A DNA stretch of 64,000 bases, from contig NW_020844827.1 of the NCBI RefSeq assembly GCF_003704095.1, positions 124,001-188,000 of the forward strand, written 5' to 3'. The DNA is from Pocillopora damicornis. Its lineage: Eukaryota. Below, one piece after another: positions 3,001-12,000 of this stretch. A model generated the notes under the pieces. That model did no database searches. It worked only from the letters and a program-made list of their open reading frames with translations, and was not told where the DNA came from. Numbering within the stretch: the first letter of the stretch is position 1; each line of letters opens with the position of its first letter. The position numbers and the translations under genes are program-made.

Positions 3001-6000
3001 GCTAAAAGCATTACACTGGCTTTTTCATCTGTATGACAAAGACGCTCTGAAGCCGACTCTTTTGGATTTGAAGAAATTTCTCCTGCCGCTGTGAATTTAA
3101 GGTGAGTGTTCCGACAGTCTTTTAACCATACTGATAAATAATATATGCGAGGTAATAAAATTGTTGATACTTGGCGATTCTCGCCCTTAGTGCTGTAATT
3201 TGCATGTAAGAACTGAATATATTAACTTGTAAGTCGTGGCGTGGTGTATTTATTTCTGAGTGTTTTAATCGGATCTTGTGTTGTTTTTCGCCGTCCGTGA
3301 CTGAATAATCTCTCAAATTTGCCAAGGTTCGCCTGGAGTGTGACGACTGAACCGAAGGAAATACAGAAATCGGGAAATTGTAAACAGACGTACGGATCGT
3401 GGTTTTGTTTTTTTACATAAGCGCTGTAATGTTGCTTCGCTCATACTGTTGGATGTTGTGTAGGAAATGTCGCTCATAAATTCAACGGCGGTGATGTCAT
3501 CTGCTAGAAAGAGAGGACTTAGCGTGTGATTCGATCGTCATCTTTCAGAAATAGTTTCCAGTCGTTTATAGTGAATTCGTCATTTAACACGGCTGTTGTG
3601 TTGTGAACATCACTCGTTCATCAGACAGACACGCGCAGTTTTTTCTTCCTAGAGTACTTCTTGGCGAGGCTCTGACCGCGTTTGATTTGCGTTATCTCGT
3701 CAATCGCTGTGATCTAACTTTAGAGGGAACACCACCGAGAAGTTCACGTATTAATAAGCGAGCAAGCGGGGAAGATCGAAGAAGTTATTTCACAGGACCT
3801 GTCGAATACCACCGGAAACCAACGTGTTTATAATCTGGTGCTGTTTGTTCCTTTGAGTGTACCACACTGAGCGGTTCTAATGCTCGGTGAAGAAGTATTC
3901 AAGGTAGATTTCTTGTTTATTGATATCTTTGTACAGGAGCCTTGTGTTTTTTTGTATCCCGGCTTTTAACCTTCACATTCGCTAAAACGTTTCGTCTTTC
4001 AATCTCGGGTTAAATACATGCTGTAGCAGGTTAGCAGTTAATATTAAACTGGATTCAATACGGAACTTTTTAGCTGCGGTGTTTTGTATTTTTTTCTTCA
4101 TTGCATCAACATTCTTTGTCAGCACAGAATCGAGATGTGTACTTTTATCGTAACGAGGCTCTTAGTTTTTAGAAAGCTTTTTCTGACTTTATTAATTGTT
4201 TCTAATTGTTTTATATCCGAAATGTCACGTAATTTTTTGGTGAAATCGAACTCAACCGTGCTTGGCAAAATATTATCAATTCATTGAAAGCACTCATGCA
4301 ATATTTATAATATTTCTGTTATAGAGTTATATTCGCCCATACTCTATATCTAAGGGAGAGAGATGTTTGTTTTTGTTTAATTCTGCCTTTTATCCTCTAT
4401 TTACTGAGCCAAGTTTGATGAATGTATTATGAGAGACAAAATTATCTTCATCTAGTTTACATTTTGTACATTTTTCGCTCGTCAAGGGTTATTCGGCGCC
4501 CTTTTGTAAATATGAAAGTAATAAGTACCATGCATGTATATTGGAGTTAGATGCTCACTTTTATATTGCTTTCCAATTTATCGATTTCGTTTAGAATAGA
4601 TTTTGTATCTTGTCCTCATGATGGATATTTTTGGCTTAAAGCTAATCCGTTTTGTGAGAAAGAGAAGAACTATTTGCGGTCCAAAAGCGTTGTGCAATGA
4701 TTATTTTGAAGATAATTACTAACATGTTTACCTAATTAAGGGAAAACGCTGAAAGTTTGTTTCATTTATCAACTTTTTTGTTTTTTTCGGAAAATGAACT
4801 GAATTTCTCGAGCAGAATTTTTCGAAATAACCTCTTCACTTCGGTTCTTTAGGTGAAAACGAAAAAACGTTTCTGCAAATATTTACTAGATGATACACAT
4901 AATGTTTTCTTTTTCTATTGATTACAAATAGCAACCCAAGTTATTTTCACCGTAGTTTCCCGCAAGTTACATTAATTTACAAAAGAAAAATTATTAGAGT
5001 TTTATTTGTATCGAACGTTAAAATGGGCAGCAAAATCACGATAATATTGAAATTTTTAGTCTACCTTTATACCTAGCGGCTAAGAACTTGAAAATCTCTT
5101 TTCCAGTATAGCGTTATGTACATCAGTTCTTACATGCAAAGGCCGACCCTAATGCTTCAAACAATTTCTGTCGAAATTTGACCTTCCATAATATATTTCT
5201 TTTTTTTCTTATTTATTTTCGAATGATAAAGTTTTTTAATTTTCGTCGTCTCTTCAGATTGCATGCAGAAAGAAGCTTCAACAGAACTTGCTGCTGGCGA
5301 AATATCTCATGGGCGATCGTGTTTCGTAGCAACAGTGGTTATCCGCCCTAAACATATGCGCAATACTGAGGGAGCTCCATGGGATTTGCAAGAAAATGGA
5401 GCCAAAGAGGAACCCGAGGGCTTGAGGCTGAGAGCAAGTGCTCGTTTTGGTCCCGAAGATGACACACCTGTAGTTGAATCAGGATCGTTATTAAGGAATA
5501 CTGGTACAACGACTAGTTTAGATGGTGAATGTAGTTCTTCTACTGAGATATTTGAAAAAGAAAGAAATATGTTACACAGCGAGTCTAGTCTCGAGCCACA
5601 GACAGGTGGGAGTATTCGTGACAGAATAGCGGCGCTTAAAGCTGCCTCGGGAATGAAAACACTGTGTGTTACTCCAGGCAAAGAGCAGGTGAAGAAGCCT
5701 TTTACCAAACCTGCCGTTAGAGCGCGCGAAGACGAAGAAAATGAAAAAGTGAAAACAGACCTAGGAGGTGAATCTCCAAAATCGAACGAAGAATCGTCGA
5801 AGACAGAACGTGAATCTGAGATGTCCCAGATCTCTCCAAAAAATAGCATCGCGTTCGATGTGGGATTCCAAAATGCGACAAAAAGTCGCCCGCCCCCTCG
5901 TGTGTTGTCGAGATTTAAAACTGATAATTTCGAATCGAAAAACGAGGAAATTGTTTTAGAATCACCGGTTGCGGGTAATAAAGAAATTGGGGCCGTTACG

Positions 6001-9000
6001 GACAAAGCTTTAGCCTTTGAAGTCAGCTTTAACGATGAACCGCGTTCAAAACGCGCTAAGGATGAACCTTTTCTGATGCAATCACCATTCAAGGCCCTGA
6101 GAACGCGTTCTAACCTCAGGCGTCAACAGAACTCGAAGCCGTGCAAGCCAATCAGGGCGCTAGAGGATTCGGAAGATAACAATAGCTCTGAATTACCGAA
6201 GCTGCTTAAACGAAACACATTCACTCTAGATTCAGTCTCAGATCAGGGAACACCGATCGTTAAGGTTTTAGACGAACTTGCGAGTAAGGAAGAAGCCAGA
6301 CAAAAAGGAGAGGGGGAGTCAGGCGAGCGTGGCACAAAACGCAGTACCTTCACTCTAGAGTCTGTATCCTTATCTAAAGTTAATGTCACTGAGAGTGGGC
6401 TGCCTGTGGTCAATGTACTCAACGACTCTTTGATTAAGAAGGAATCTGAACTAAGTCAAGTGGAATTAGACATTGCTACGACATCTTTGTCAAACGAAAT
6501 TTCTAAAAAAAGAAGCACTTTCACTCTGGAAACTGTAGCGAAAGAATTAGATTGTGCGACAGAACAAGAAGAGAGACGGGTAACCCAATATGAAGAATAT
6601 CATCCAGGCCCCATTACTACCGATACGCTCGCAAAGCAGACTTTGACGTCAGAAGAGGAACTTGTGACCTCCGAGAAACGTTCAACATACAGTTTAGACG
6701 CAGTTTCATCGTCGTTACAAAGGGTAACTGACCAAGGTGTACTTGTCATTGAAGTTTTAAATCAGCTCGCTAAACGCGAAGAATTGCAATCGCCTGTCGG
6801 GAGTGATGCTGACAGTTCACCAGCTTTGGCCGATTCCGTTCAAAAACGTGGTACGTTCACTCTTGACACTGTGTCACAGACCATAGACGACGAGGAGAAG
6901 AAGGGCGTGTCTACAGTGAAAGTGTTAGATCAGCTTGCGTCTAAACACGAGTCCACTTCATCGACTGAGGCAAACTCGGAAGAAAAAATCAATACTGTGA
7001 CTCACCAAAATCGTGGCACCTTCACCTTGGACAGCGTGTCGCAGACTCTCGAAGATGCCGAGCGTAATGGTCTACCGGCAGTTGAGGCGTTAGATCGGCT
7101 TGCTTCTGATCAGGAGACTCATCTGATCCTTGACGCTTCATGTGAAGACAAAGTGAAAACTGAACCACCCCAAAACCGAGGCACTTACTCATTAGACTCA
7201 GTATCTCACGCGATCGAGGAGGCCGTAGAGAAAGGAATTCCAGTTTCCGTCACGTTGAATAACTTAACCCAGGAGGGGAAGACCCCTGCGCGTGCTCTTG
7301 GTGACGTTTCTGCTGGCGACAATTTTTGCCGTCTCAGTGCACACCCCGATGTGGAAGCACAGCCACATGACGATCGGGACGAGATCGAAGCCTGTTTCGA
7401 AGATGCTTTGGAACAACTGGAGGATTGCTTGACTTTTGTGACCTTCCCATCGACTTCTGATCGTAGAAGATCGTATTCTGACAGGAGGCGATCGTTTACT
7501 GACCGGAATGAATCGTCTAATGATGGGGGACAGTTGTCATCTGATCAAGAACGTTCTTCCGAGACACCTGGAAAGCGTGGCACGTACGATCTCGACGATG
7601 TATCCAATTCTGTCGAAGTTGGTACCAAAGTGGGGATCCCTGTTGTTGAAACGCTGGAACACTTGTCAAAAACAAAGAGCCGTCAAGGGCAATCTTTTCA
7701 AGAAACTCGCCAGTTTGAGCAAAACAGAAGAACTTATACGCTGGATGAAGTTTCCTTTTCACTTCAGAATGCCTCTGAGAATGGTATCCCTGTGGTTGAA
7801 GCTCTCCAAAACGTAACTAAAAGTACCAAGCTAGTTCAAGAGACTGGGGATAGGGCACAGAAGCGAGGCACATACACCCTTGATGATGTATCGAAGTCGC
7901 TGGAGCGCGCTAAGAGCACCGGGATGCCTGTTATTGAAGCGCTAGAGTCTTTGTCAAAAGAAAAGTCATCGAGTCCACTAAGACTTAAGATCCCAGAGAG
8001 AGGCGGTGAAAACAGAGGGACTTACACTTTGGATGAAGTGAGTCATTCACTGGAAAAGGCAAAACAGAGAGGTCTCCCTGTTGTGGACGCTTTAGGGCAG
8101 CTTACACATGCTAAAGATGGCGTCTCTCTCCGAGGAACGCCTGATGCCGTCCATCGAAGGCAAGAAAAACTAGTTAACAGAAAAACCTACGCGCTGGCCA
8201 GTCCGCTTGAGACAATTGGTGAAGGAACTAAGTTACGCTTGTATGATGGCAGCCAGCGGCAGATGTTATCGCCACTGACTTTACATATGAAAACAAACGA
8301 AGCCACCCCTGAGAAAGTAAACAGCAGCGACAGTAAAGCAAAGGGCTTAGGTGTTGTGCAGAAGTTAGATTTCTTGACTTCAGCTTGCGAGCTTTTGCTG
8401 GAGGCGAATGCCAAAGAAATGGCTCGAGATCGTGGGCAAACAAGTTTGGAGAGTTCTTGGGAAACCCCAACTATTGACGAATCCTCTCGAACCTTGCCGA
8501 AGACTCCTAATGAAGGTAAAGAATCTGATCGCCGTACGTATTCGTTAGACATCGTCTCGCGGACTGTTGACGACGCCACAGCGGCAGGGATCCCAGTTGT
8601 AGAAGCTCTAAAAAGTGTGAAACCTGTGGCCAAAGCAAATACAACTTACAGAACTAATCTAATGCGACTGAATTCCAAATCCGACTCGGAACTCATTCAC
8701 GATGAGACCGAGAAAAAGTCGTCGGAGAGGAACACTCATTCCCTTGGGGACGTGTCAAAGACGCTTTCAGACAAGACGAAAGCTGGGATTCCTGTCATAC
8801 AAGCCCTGGATCAACTTGCCAAGGATTTGGTGGAGTTTTCAAGAACTGCGCTGGGCGAAGATGTGAAGGTTTCCTCTCTTGGGAAAGAAAACCGAAAGAG
8901 AAAACGCCATTCGGAAGTTATTGATCGCGGTAATAAAACAGCTGGTCAGCAGTCATCACACCCTTCCACTCAAGGACCACCTAACTCCTCACCCATGCGA

Positions 9001-12000
9001 AAAGCTCATTCGTTAAATGATATAGCTTCTGCTGTGCAACTGGCATTTCAAACTGGTACTTCTTTAGCGGACCTTTTAGACAGTATTGCATCTGAAAAAC
9101 CTGTCGAACAGCTTTCATCTTCGAGTGACGTCCGACCGCGATCGGTCGATTCCGGATTTATCTCGTCACTTTCCGACTACGATATTTCGTCACAAAGTGT
9201 GGATTCGCCGCGCAACCGAAGCAACACGCTCATTCTTGATAGCTCGAACGAAGAACTAGATTTGGCAAAACTCGTGGGTTCTGCACCAAGCGATAAAATT
9301 GTTCTCACCGAAGACACGACGATCAACGAAAACCGTCGAACGTTCACACTTGATCACGTGAGCGGCTCGGTAGAACGTGAAATTTCACGGGGTGTACCTA
9401 TAATCGAGGCTTTGAAAAAAGTCTCCAACAACTGTGAGATGAAAATGCAAATAAGTGAAAAGATCGAAAGTATAGACAACACTGAGAATAAATCGAGAGA
9501 AATTTCAGAAGAAACGGTGATTAACAACTCTGTGAAAAAGAAGTCGCCTCCGAAGCCTAAACGACAAATATCAAAGAAAACTGCGTCACTGCGAACTAAT
9601 TCTGACGCGTTTGTGGTTGAGTTTTACTCCTCTAGCGGTCAGCAGGGTCAAAATACGTCCAAATTTCAGATTGTGGACAATGAAGTTGAAGAAGTGAATG
9701 CCAGTAATGATGAATCTAACGTGAAAAACTCTGACGGGAAAGCGCAAGGGATTGAAGATAAATCTAGCGTTACTTCGTCGTCGTCAGATAAGGTCCCTGC
9801 AAAGGGGCTTAAACCTGTATCTACAAGCACACCCTCACGAGAACGTGCCACTTGGCGCGCAAGTGGAAGCGTTCTGGACAAGATTGAGAGTCTAATGGAT
9901 GCTGAAGGGGATTGTGGGATGTCACCTGCGGATGTTCTTGATCAAGTAACTGACTTACCTGATGATTTTCAAGGTTTGTTTGAAATGGAAAGTAGAACCT
10001 GATACTTCCATTAGTGATCAGGTTCAAACCTTTGATAACTCATTAAAGGTTAAACCAAAGGCTTTGTTTTTTAATGACTACAGCAAATTGTTGTTAGCGA
10101 AAGGAGTCTCTTGTAGTCATGATTTTGCAGACTCAGGGCTGTTTGCAAATGTAATGGTAAAAAGTCATGTTATTTTCTTCTTGTTTTCTGTTCAGAACCA
10201 GCCAGTAAGAGTCGCGTAACTTAACAGTTTAATATAACGTTTTGACTTTTTGGCGTGAAAATGATGCTCGAGTTACATGAAGAAGTCTCTCAGCCGTGTG
10301 GCGCTCCTTAGAACATTCACCAGGGTCACTCTTCGTCACGGGAGGCGCTGGCCTGATGTCTAGCGTGCTGAACTCCAGACGAAGAGGTCTGGGTTCAATA
10401 CATGGCTAGGTCATTGTGTTGTGTTCTTGGGCAAGATGCTTTACTGTTATAGTAAATCTTTCCCCCCCCCCCAGGAGGAAATTTAATGAAATCCTGGGGG
10501 TGGGGATGGGGATTTCCTGCAATAGATGATTGAGTTAGTCTCCTCGTCACCTCTTTAAGGAGTGCTAAGCACTCAAAGATGATTTTAATCAATGTTTTGC
10601 TCTTAGGTGAGATTGAAGAGCCGGAGCAGGACGAAGCCGAAAATGAACAAGCTGTTACATCACAGATCGCCTATCTGCGCATGCAATTGGAGGAAAAACG
10701 GCGTCACATCGAGGCAGAGAAACATCGAGCCCAGGCCGAGTGGGAAGACCAGCGACGGAGACTGGGACAGACTGCCTTTTGGTATGTTATTGGAAAGGCA
10801 CAAGGAGGTCCGGGCGTCGGAGAAGGGACTGAGGTGAGTGAGTAATTTGGAAATCATCGTGTTCTGCGCAGCCGACATTTGGTAAAGTTTTACAACCGTT
10901 AATTTGGTTAGATTTGATTGTTTGAATAGTAATGAAGAATACAAGCGCACAAACCGAGCTTACGCTCCTTGAGATTCCTAGATCAGGAGAATTCTCTTCA
11001 TCGTAAATGCTTTTTAAACTCTTAGGTAAAGCGTCCGGAGATGGTTCCGGTCACGACGCCTCATTCCCACGAAACACCGAGAAAGTCTGTGCCCGAGTTT
11101 CCCAATCAACCCTCGCCTCCCGTCGCTTGGTCGTCCCCAGCAAACTCTCCATTGCCTGCTACTGCACTGGAGTCCAGTCCTCCAAACAATGCAGGGCTTG
11201 AGACTCGTGAATTTCGTCTGTCTGATTATCCACCTGTTGATAATCAGGGAACAGCGCGTCCGTCATCCCAGCCAGCGGTGGAAGTCGGTTCCAGGCCCAC
11301 GCCGGGACCAACACGTCCAGCTTCACACGAATCAGCGGCTTCCCGCCCCAGTCCTACGCGAAAGTGCTGGGATGTGAACGTTGGGCCAGTACTTACACCG
11401 CCCCCATTGGTGCATCCTGACGCAGAATCCGAGAGTAATGACGCTAAAGAAGAATCGAACAACTTTGGAGGTACAGGAGAGATTGAGGTTGAGATTCACA
11501 CCCCGCAGAAGAAAGGAATGGCGATGTTTATCAGCGATGATGACAATCTTGCGCCTCAGGTAAAGTATTTGGGACAGAAAGGTTAGCTTAGGCGGGAAAT
11601 TGCAGAAGAACCAATCCTCTCATGAAAACTTGACCTTTTCAATCTGTATATCTTTGTTTTCTTCATCAATACAGGGATTGACTCCAGAACAACAACGGAA
11701 GCGAGAGAGGTTCATGAAGGCTCGGCAAAAGAAGCAAGCAGAGGAGAAATCACGAAAGGAGGCAGAATTAGAGAAAAAGAGGCGGTAAATGGAGTTACAT
11801 AATTTTTAAAGACCAAGAAAATAATCAGAAATGAATTTTAACTCAATTTTTATGATTTCCACGCTGAATTTTAAATGTCAACCTCTCTCTTAGTCTATGT
11901 GGCTTTCAAACAAGTATGACTCAAAAAAAAGGGCAAATAGCTAATAGCAAATGGAGCAACATTCAACTGTGTGCCAAAAGGATTCCGGGATTGCTCTGGT

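Follow-up and report, generated by a model that had tools for sequence, protein, structure and literature searches.

CAMSAP/Patronin proteins organise non-centrosomal microtubules in neurons, epithelia and cilia, and CAMSAP1-3 and Drosophila Patronin have the domain order CH, CC1, CKK. Two kinds of described repeats are also relevant here. Tau-type repeats are 31-32 aa long, and the repeats known to bind the lattice are basic and attach to the acidic surface of tubulin. LC8-binding TQT motifs (ASCIZ, Nup159) and phospho-threonine clusters read by FHA domains (MDC1 TQXF) are examples of multivalent arrays of linear motifs in disordered regions. The sequence around CC1 has been described as having little to no conservation (King et al., PMC4016758). 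We analysed 64,000 nt of the genome of the stony coral Pocillopora damicornis (NCBI RefSeq assembly GCF_003704095.1, contig NW_020844827.1, positions 124,001 to 188,000 of the forward strand; the whole stretch is called the window, and its first letter is position 1). A CAMSAP/Patronin gene that extends into this window contains a giant exon encoding an array of 33-residue units, about 14 in number. This exon belongs to an isoform without the CH domain. The array may be a multivalent docking platform for a putative partner at microtubule minus ends, a reading to which we give an even chance of being right.

The repeat array and its host gene

The array is contained in an open frame that runs uninterrupted from 5263 to 10002 on the forward strand (1579 aa); all features described below are on this strand. 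The original prediction placed about 15 copies of a 33-aa repeat here, and pattern and profile searches agree with it in position and spacing. Matches to a simple pattern start at nt 6208, 6337, 6508, 6676, 6844, 7009, 7174, 7573, 7723, 7861, 8011, 8176 and 9331. With profiles built from the copies, 13 units, among them those at 8521/8527 and 8719/8725, score 33-66 bits; about five further copies are partial or divergent. Copies 3-7 follow one another at 56, 56, 55 and 55 aa, and copies 8-11 at 50, 46 and 50 aa. We counted 14-15 instances of the core pattern R-x-T-[YF]-x-[LIV], compared with 0.0-0.2 in shuffled sequence, and a chance origin of the array is excluded. Tandem Repeats Finder found no tandem repeat at the nucleotide level. 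The copy-versus-copy identity at codon positions 1, 2 and 3 is 0.54, 0.71 and 0.27, respectively, indicating saturation at synonymous sites but retention of the peptide. The copies are old and are maintained by selection on the peptide.

We then identified the host gene. Searches were run exon by exon, and the sole join was a translation across the 3901/5258 junction, made to read the frame. A word-based protein search with the exon product found 40 orthologues, and the full-length NCBI models among them carry the Pfam domains CAMSAP_CC1 and CAMSAP_CKK. NCBI names such as 'uncharacterized protein', 'fap1 adhesin-like' and 'repetitive organellar protein' conceal CAMSAP isoforms of this kind. 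In the window, a CC1 exon common to both isoforms lies at 10606-10835, where the RNA contigs end; by tblastn, 10606-10830 is 85-97% identical to the CC1 of P0006 (Oculina isoform X1) and P0087 (Stylophora), two proteins matched by CAMSAP_CC1 (PF17095). The exons of the CKK domain, which binds microtubule minus ends, were located at 12159-14059 by tblastn with P0006 residues 1925-2153. CAMSAP_CKK (PF08683) matches P0006 at residues 2012-2129, and P0006, P0028, P0085 and P0042 score 158-164 bits. Two CH exons (PF11971) are found at G000:C1462:118279-118398 and 119291-119425, on the same contig and strand, 4.6-5.7 kb upstream of the window start. They are part of the canonical isoform and are absent from the repeat-bearing one.

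With CH, CC1 and CKK all present, the domain matches identify the gene as the stony-coral CAMSAP/Patronin orthologue. Its domains follow the same order on one strand as in CAMSAP1-3 and Patronin, and over the shared C-terminal half the identity to vertebrate CKK regions is 40-50%. Among the matches, Stylophora pistillata is the nearest named relative (78% identity over the canonical exons). The microtubule context supposed in the original prediction is thereby borne out by the host gene. What that prediction missed is that the array belongs to a CAMSAP isoform and descends from a single ancestral CAMSAP motif. Unlike the coral isoform, with its arm of 1572 residues and no CH, no vertebrate or insect CAMSAP in a 104-protein set has such an arm. 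Some bilaterian CAMSAP isoforms are also long: P0113, P0109 (Haliotis rufescens) and P0195 (Macrobrachium) have 2192-3773 aa, with big insertions ahead of the ancestral motif or CC1, and are without the cnidarian repeat array. Another CAMSAP_CH match, at G000:C1689:251240-251389 on another contig (45 bits, one in-frame TAA), could represent a paralogue, an exon split by an intron or a pseudogene.

The giant exon occupies 5258-9973 (4716 nt, phase 1 at both ends; acceptor ag/ATT at 5256-5258, donor G/gt at 9973/9974) and has an ATG at 5263. PolyA RNA contigs from three studies span 5256-9971 in one piece. An RNA joint from 9971/9973 to 10605/10606, with GT..AG, is present in three runs. On the 5' side, RNA contigs extend 628-665 nt upstream of the 3901/5258 junction. 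Their mapped part is the last 30 nt, which defines the 3' end of an alternative 5' exon at 3872-3901 (loose-end consensus of RNA runs X2, X6 and X9, with unique mapping). In this 5' exon, an in-frame stop lies 13 codons ahead of the ATG at 5263, and there is a further in-frame ATG near 3880. Because RNA joins this stop-containing 5' exon to 5258, the giant exon is the first coding exon of an isoform without CH. A plain in-frame cassette reading, which phase 1 at both ends allows, was set aside, since the RNA contigs instead join the exon in this way.

In the canonical isoform, the last exon before CC1 lies at 1974-2109 (from tblastn with Stylophora P0087, the sequence itself and Oculina isoform X5, P0085). 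Its phase 1 donor, G/gt at 2109/2110, is spliced to the same acceptor at 10606, and the giant exon is skipped. The repeat-bearing transcript starts inside the 8.5-kb intron between the exon ending at 2109 and the CC1 exon. In its product, a 1572-residue acidic, mostly disordered arm replaces the CH-containing N-terminus of about 1470 residues, and the CC1-CKK half is shared. Within this large intron, about 3240-3901 can be assigned to an alternative 5' exon or to an internal promoter of the gene. In the intron between the giant and CC1 exons, short pieces of RNA contigs, present in all four runs, align over no more than about 35-40 nt at 10403-10445 and run on into unrelated sequence on either side; this is probably a dispersed repeat.

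The same two isoforms are found in other cnidarians. Oculina isoform X1 (P0006, 2158 aa) starts at the equivalent methionine and is without a CH domain. Oculina isoform X5 (P0085, 1995 aa) has CH and the counterparts of window exons 2-1864 and 1974-2109, and then passes straight to CC1. Nematostella has the same isoform pair (P0042 versus P0089). For Oculina, Montipora, Nematostella, Hydra and Rhopilema, NCBI has models that begin in the equivalent exon, and the CH-containing isoforms skip it. Our literature search found no description of this cnidarian CAMSAP isoform.

Anatomy of the 33-residue unit

We calculated residue frequencies over 639 distinct units from across Cnidaria. Arg at position 4 is invariant (100%), and position 6 is Thr in 95% of units (Ala 4%, Ser 1%). 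Position 7 is Tyr or Phe in 94% (Tyr, Phe or His in 99%), position 8 is Thr, Ser, Asp or Asn in 95%, and position 9 is Leu in 95%. These are followed by Val12 (90%), Gly23 (94%), Pro25 (74%) and Leu30 (99%), and Lys occurs at -3 from the Thr in 56%. An AlphaFold2 model of the unit, made with an alignment of 29 units (A1), has a predicted local distance difference test score (pLDDT) of 87. Residues 1-8 are predicted to be extended, helix 1 to comprise residues 9-22 and helix 2 residues 26-39, with a turn at G23-(I/L)24-P25. This is the shape that had been proposed from the sequence, a strand-like basic lead followed by helix, Gly-Pro and helix. Standard helix-capping rules describe an N-cap residue, a hydrophobic staple and a capping box. 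In the model, position 8 would be the N-cap, Tyr/Phe7 and Val12 the hydrophobic staple, and Asp/Glu at 10-11 the capping box, so that part of the 'TFTLD' signature is probably structural. R4 and T6 are outside the helix, and capping leaves both unexplained.

The units are separated by linkers of 12-25 residues, with longer gaps in places. In an AlphaFold2 model of a 196-residue segment with four units (33-sequence alignment), four separate hairpins were predicted at pLDDT 80-88. The linkers are below pLDDT 50, the predicted template modelling score (pTM) is 0.22, no strands are paired and the hairpins are unpacked. The modules are thus predicted to be independent, like beads on a string, which is in line with the multivalent array of the original prediction.

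These models bear on self-association, the main rival of the docking reading. According to this idea, the lead and hairpin of units in different molecules would pair as four-helix bundles or ribbon-helix-helix-like dimers, thereby cross-linking CAMSAP and clustering or condensing minus ends. A strand-prone lead, a helix, a Gly turn and a helix form the topology of a ribbon-helix-helix half-domain, such as those of Arc, CopG and antitoxins, and the coral unit resembles these in size and in the order of its elements, including the basic lead. Arc, CopG and antitoxins are also among the weak Foldseek matches, and the 30-residue hairpin core is too small for much stability alone. Condensation of CAMSAP/Patronin is an active topic (PMC9239687 and a 2026 bioRxiv preprint). 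However, none of the fold matches is significant (Foldseek E 4.8-9.3; VIA-align Z at most 4.6), and neither Pfam scans of the 29 units nor PDB profile searches gave a ribbon-helix-helix family. The coral host, moreover, is a eukaryotic cytoskeletal protein. Adjacent units show neither strand pairing nor hairpin packing in the four-unit model, and ribbon-helix-helix pseudo-dimers of neighbouring units were rejected on this basis. We regard self-association as unlikely.

Direct binding of tubulin or the lattice, with each unit contacting a tubulin subunit as tau/MAP2 repeats do, would suit a host protein that binds microtubule minus ends. Like tau, MAP2 and MAP4 repeats, the coral units are tandem, are about 31-33 aa long and belong to a microtubule-associated protein. 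Yet they have no sequence relation to these repeats, are predicted to be helical rather than extended and, instead of being basic, range from acidic to neutral. With a pI of 5.2 the exon product is acidic, and its units, at net charges of -3 to +2, are close to neutral. Neither the exon product nor the 29 units match a tubulin-binding or MAP repeat in Pfam, and CAMSAPs already bind microtubules through CKK. The tubulin-binding half of the original suggestion of a tubulin- or partner-binding array is therefore, because of charge, improbable.

The unit also remains unrecognised, as first described. A Pfam scan of the whole exon product gave only sub-threshold T2SSF (24.7 against 25.2 bits, with no single stretch), DUF3247 and DUF6276. 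Pfam scans of the 29 single units gave nothing consistent and no family at gathering score. We regard the T2SSF signal as chance; it reflects a local G-(I/L)-P-x-x-E-A-L-x-x-L resemblance summed over the repeats. Pfam scans of orthologues likewise gave only sub-threshold signals for the repeats, and two tags, PF27295 (Y4kD_C, rated 'faint') and PF24312 (Ig-like_POM152, under its cut-off), are spurious. PDB searches with protein and profile returned nothing below E 0.07, Foldseek and VIA-align on the single-unit model found generic helical hairpins only, and the ESM Atlas gave no usable match. The module is an unannotated, expressed and deeply conserved part of a known protein family.

The individual copies are as follows. 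Copy 1 (6202-6300, 33.0 bits) has a 7-aa deletion in helix 1, copy 2 lies at 6331-6450 (41.4 bits), and copy 3 (6502-6567, 15.0 bits) is an N-terminal half with lead and helix 1 only. Copies 4 to 7 are at 6670-6789 (52.0 bits), 6838-6957 (54.4 bits), 7003-7122 (62.5 bits) and 7168-7287 (54.1 bits). They are followed by copy 8 at 7567-7686 (55.8 bits; AlphaFold2 hairpin at pLDDT of about 80-85), copy 9 at 7717-7836 (61.3 bits), copy 10 at 7855-7974 and copy 11 at 8005-8124 (64.8 bits). Copy 10 scores best (66.3 bits); it heads alignment A1 and was used for the single-unit fold. Copies 12 and 13 are at 8521-8640 (50.0 bits) and 8719-8838 (53.9 bits), and copy 14 is at 9325-9444 (52.2 bits). A divergent copy at 8989-9108 (also 8995; 10.0 bits) has Ala for Thr and is without the Gly-Pro turn. 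A lead-only remnant, NRSNTLILD, was read from the translation at 9214-9246 and is not scored by the profile. Likewise unscored is a terminal divergent unit at 9847-9957 (WRASGSVLD..., with a G-M-S-P turn), taken from the translation and the orthologue consensus, in which it is conserved.

Between copies 11 and 12 lies a strongly conserved non-repeat block at 8143-8400, with near-invariant columns in the 33-sequence alignment. It starts with a lead-only half-motif, NRKTYAL (nt 8176; seen by eye, not scored by the profile), and is closed by a C-terminal half-unit at nt 8326-8394 (4.0 bits). These 86 residues, from DAVHRRQEKLVNRKTYAL to LDFLTSACELLL, are nearly invariant across anthozoan orthologues, to a higher degree than the repeats themselves. 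The block is without a Pfam match and could form a domain of its own. The exon product also has three copies of a second short motif, (A/S)-F-(D/E/V)-V-x-F (5851-5868, 6013-6030 and 9607-9624), with relatives such as AFEVSFD, ISFDVSFDD, GFFVDL and SFVIEYY in anemone, octocoral and medusozoan orthologues. Just before the third copy of this motif, a basic proline-rich patch, SPPKPKR (9547-9564), is conserved, and octocoral products have APPKPKR.

Conservation and descent from a single motif

We searched 1.84 billion representative proteins with the profile A1, built from the 29 units. This gave 37 matches at E <= 1e-3, and all the convincing ones are CAMSAP exon products. The true matches include anthozoan exon products, octocoral-like products and a group beginning MFTLGDVADILD. 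This group includes Hydra and Rhopilema CAMSAP models, and at one locus (L006) a CC1 open reading frame lies directly downstream. The possibility that these MFTLGDVAD... sequences form a second family in a different protein was ruled out by that downstream frame and by the Hydra and Rhopilema members; the group is the medusozoan version of the same exon. The profile matches P0052, P0053, P0060, P0061, P0063 and P0066 were judged by eye to be unrelated repetitive proteins. In the 234-Mb assembly of the coral itself, all 14 of 14 profile matches are inside the giant exon. A match to a known Pfam repeat and a lack of conservation in orthologues had been named as outcomes that would speak against the repeat; the searches brought up no known Pfam repeat, and the motif is kept in orthologues.

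The number of units differs among lineages. Stony coral orthologues have 13-19 units, a more distant anthozoan group (28-36% identity) has 11-13, and Nematostella X2 (P0042, LOC5518363) has 15-17. Xenia has 4 and the octocoral-like products have 9-12. In medusozoan orthologues, two units are complete, and 7-13 leads of the type (K/R)-R-P-G-T-(Y/F)-V-(L/I) stand bare, without hairpins. By these matches, the module is specific to CAMSAP and conserved across all cnidarians. Because medusozoans keep and multiply bare leads without hairpins, the lead would be the core element of the module. That most hairpins are dropped and the leads kept is also a better fit to a linear docking motif than to self-association.

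Among 31 stony-coral orthologues, identity is 66% at motif residues versus 47% at linker residues (Mann-Whitney p = 6e-13). Of the claim that the linkers have diverged while the motif is kept, the second part stands; the linkers are less conserved than the motif, yet they have not freely diverged within Scleractinia. Together with the codon-position identities, the stronger conservation of the motif agrees with the predicted selection on the peptide and its conservation in orthologues. Five positions are 94-100% invariant over hundreds of units in Anthozoa and Medusozoa, and with the motif conserved above the linkers and the synonymous sites saturated, the module is probably functional. The arm might instead be a passive spacer, an entropic bristle or tether whose repeats are relics of exon growth by internal duplication. 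Its length, its acidic, Ser/Glu/Thr/Lys-rich composition and its mostly predicted disorder would suit such a role. However, invariant positions, third codon positions randomised with second ones kept, and homology to a motif shared with bilaterians are unexpected for relics. A passive spacer is disfavoured by this conservation, and we consider it very improbable indeed.

The shared motif is a single copy in canonical CAMSAPs. In the window, a six-frame profile match places it at 338-415 (RGSYTV...AAGIPVI), in a large exon of the canonical isoform. Other corals, anemones, an octocoral and hydrozoans also have a single SYT(I/V)...AGIPV(V/I) motif in their canonical isoforms, as do Haliotis, Liolophura, Babylonia, Nucella and the hemichordate Glandiceps. 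Everywhere it lies between CH and CC1, outside any Pfam domain and 50-600 residues before CC1. A profile built from eight cnidarian motifs only was searched in 104 bilaterian CAMSAPs. It matched Haliotis at E 5e-10 to 3e-9, Glandiceps at E 1.5e-8 and Liolophura at E 2e-7, and gave no match in the vertebrates, the insects, a spider or a prawn of this set. We found no description of the canonical motif in the literature. In the CAMSAP2 of percid fish (P0108, P0160), the sequence PRSYTVSPVSS at residues of about 679-697, upstream of CC1, is lead-like and without AGIPV. It scores at noise level and may be a remnant or chance.

An hhalign comparison of the array units with the canonical motif gave a probability of 97.4% (E 1e-11, 26 columns). 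Like the array unit, the single motif has a lead, helix 1 and Gly-Ile/Leu-Pro-Val. Unlike it, the single motif has one copy, Ser in place of Thr, Arg only in cnidarians and no conserved second helix; it also sits in the CH-containing isoform, whereas the array is in the isoform without CH. Since the array is homologous to a motif shared with bilaterians, it is an amplified and elaborated derivative of a motif that existed before the cnidarian-bilaterian split.

A putative docking array at minus ends

In the docking reading, the array would load a CKK-bound minus end with many copies of one putative partner or, alternatively, bind one partner with high avidity. The contact element would be the invariant R-x-T-aromatic-x-Leu lead, which the hairpin would present or extend. 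The coral arm is analogous to LC8- and FHA-type arrays in that a short, strand-prone Thr motif is repeated in a disordered arm, an arrangement that would lead to avidity or stoichiometric loading. In contrast to LC8 arrays, the coral motif has Tyr or Phe at its centre and no TQT, and in anthozoans it is fused to a predicted helical hairpin. The TQT anchor of LC8 was not found among the 639 units, in which Gln at the centre is never above 0.5%.

Given that position 6 is nearly always Thr, with Leu at +3 and Arg at -2, a contact that depends on phospho-Thr is a reasonable guess; it might be made, for example, by an FHA-type reader of pT-x-x-L. At the sequence level, the FHA rule pT-x-x-I/L agrees with T6 and L9, each present in 95% of units. 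A phospho-switch, compatible with docking, has also been considered, in which a basophilic kinase of the PKA/Aurora type would act on every R-x-T-aromatic site and turn the array on or off. The original prediction had noted the fit to a basophilic site, and the pattern of R4 (100%), T6 (95%) and Y/F7 (94%) supports this, as does Lys at -3 in over half of the units. The lead is predicted to be exposed, with a pLDDT below that of the hairpin. Kinases of the PKA/Aurora type take Ser as well and for the most part favour it. That Ser is nearly absent (1%) argues against a generic PKA/Aurora site, and this part of the claim fares less well. Further, the homologous canonical motif has Ser, often without Arg, and phosphomimetic substitutions do not occur, as Thr6 is never replaced by Asp or Glu in the 639 units. 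A literature search found no cnidarian phosphoproteome. A switch of this generic type seems to us rather doubtful.

Several points weigh against docking and the isoform model to which it is tied. The docking partner is putative, and docking itself is suggested by sequence and model; contacts between molecules are beyond what an AlphaFold2 model of one chain can show. Instead of phosphorylation, the conservation of the Thr could have a structural reason, a beta-branched residue ahead of the N-cap, and the lack of Asp or Glu at this position counts here as well. As for the isoform, phase 1 at both ends makes use of the giant exon as an in-frame cassette possible, and the RNA evidence consists of assembled contigs, not reads, with isoform ratios outside its scope.

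Taken together with its ancestry, the docking array can be placed in an evolutionary scheme, which we offer tentatively and would not be surprised to see fail. An ancestral module, consisting of a (S/T)-(Y/F)-(T/S)-hydrophobic lead, a helix and A-G-I-P-V-V, would have been present in CAMSAP/Patronin of the common ancestor of cnidarians and bilaterians and would have escaped notice owing to its loss in vertebrates and insects. Cnidarians would have amplified it into a 14-19-valent, promoter-specific array without CH, which would recruit a putative factor to minus ends, possibly through phospho-Thr.

If this is true, non-centrosomal microtubule organisation would have a new regulatory arm in this array. 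Cnidarians, molluscs and a hemichordate have a conserved motif in the stretch between CH and CC1, which has been treated as unconserved. A putative CAMSAP interaction thereby gains a testable handle, a short peptide in which five positions are invariant, and the array is a clear case of domain birth through linear-motif amplification.

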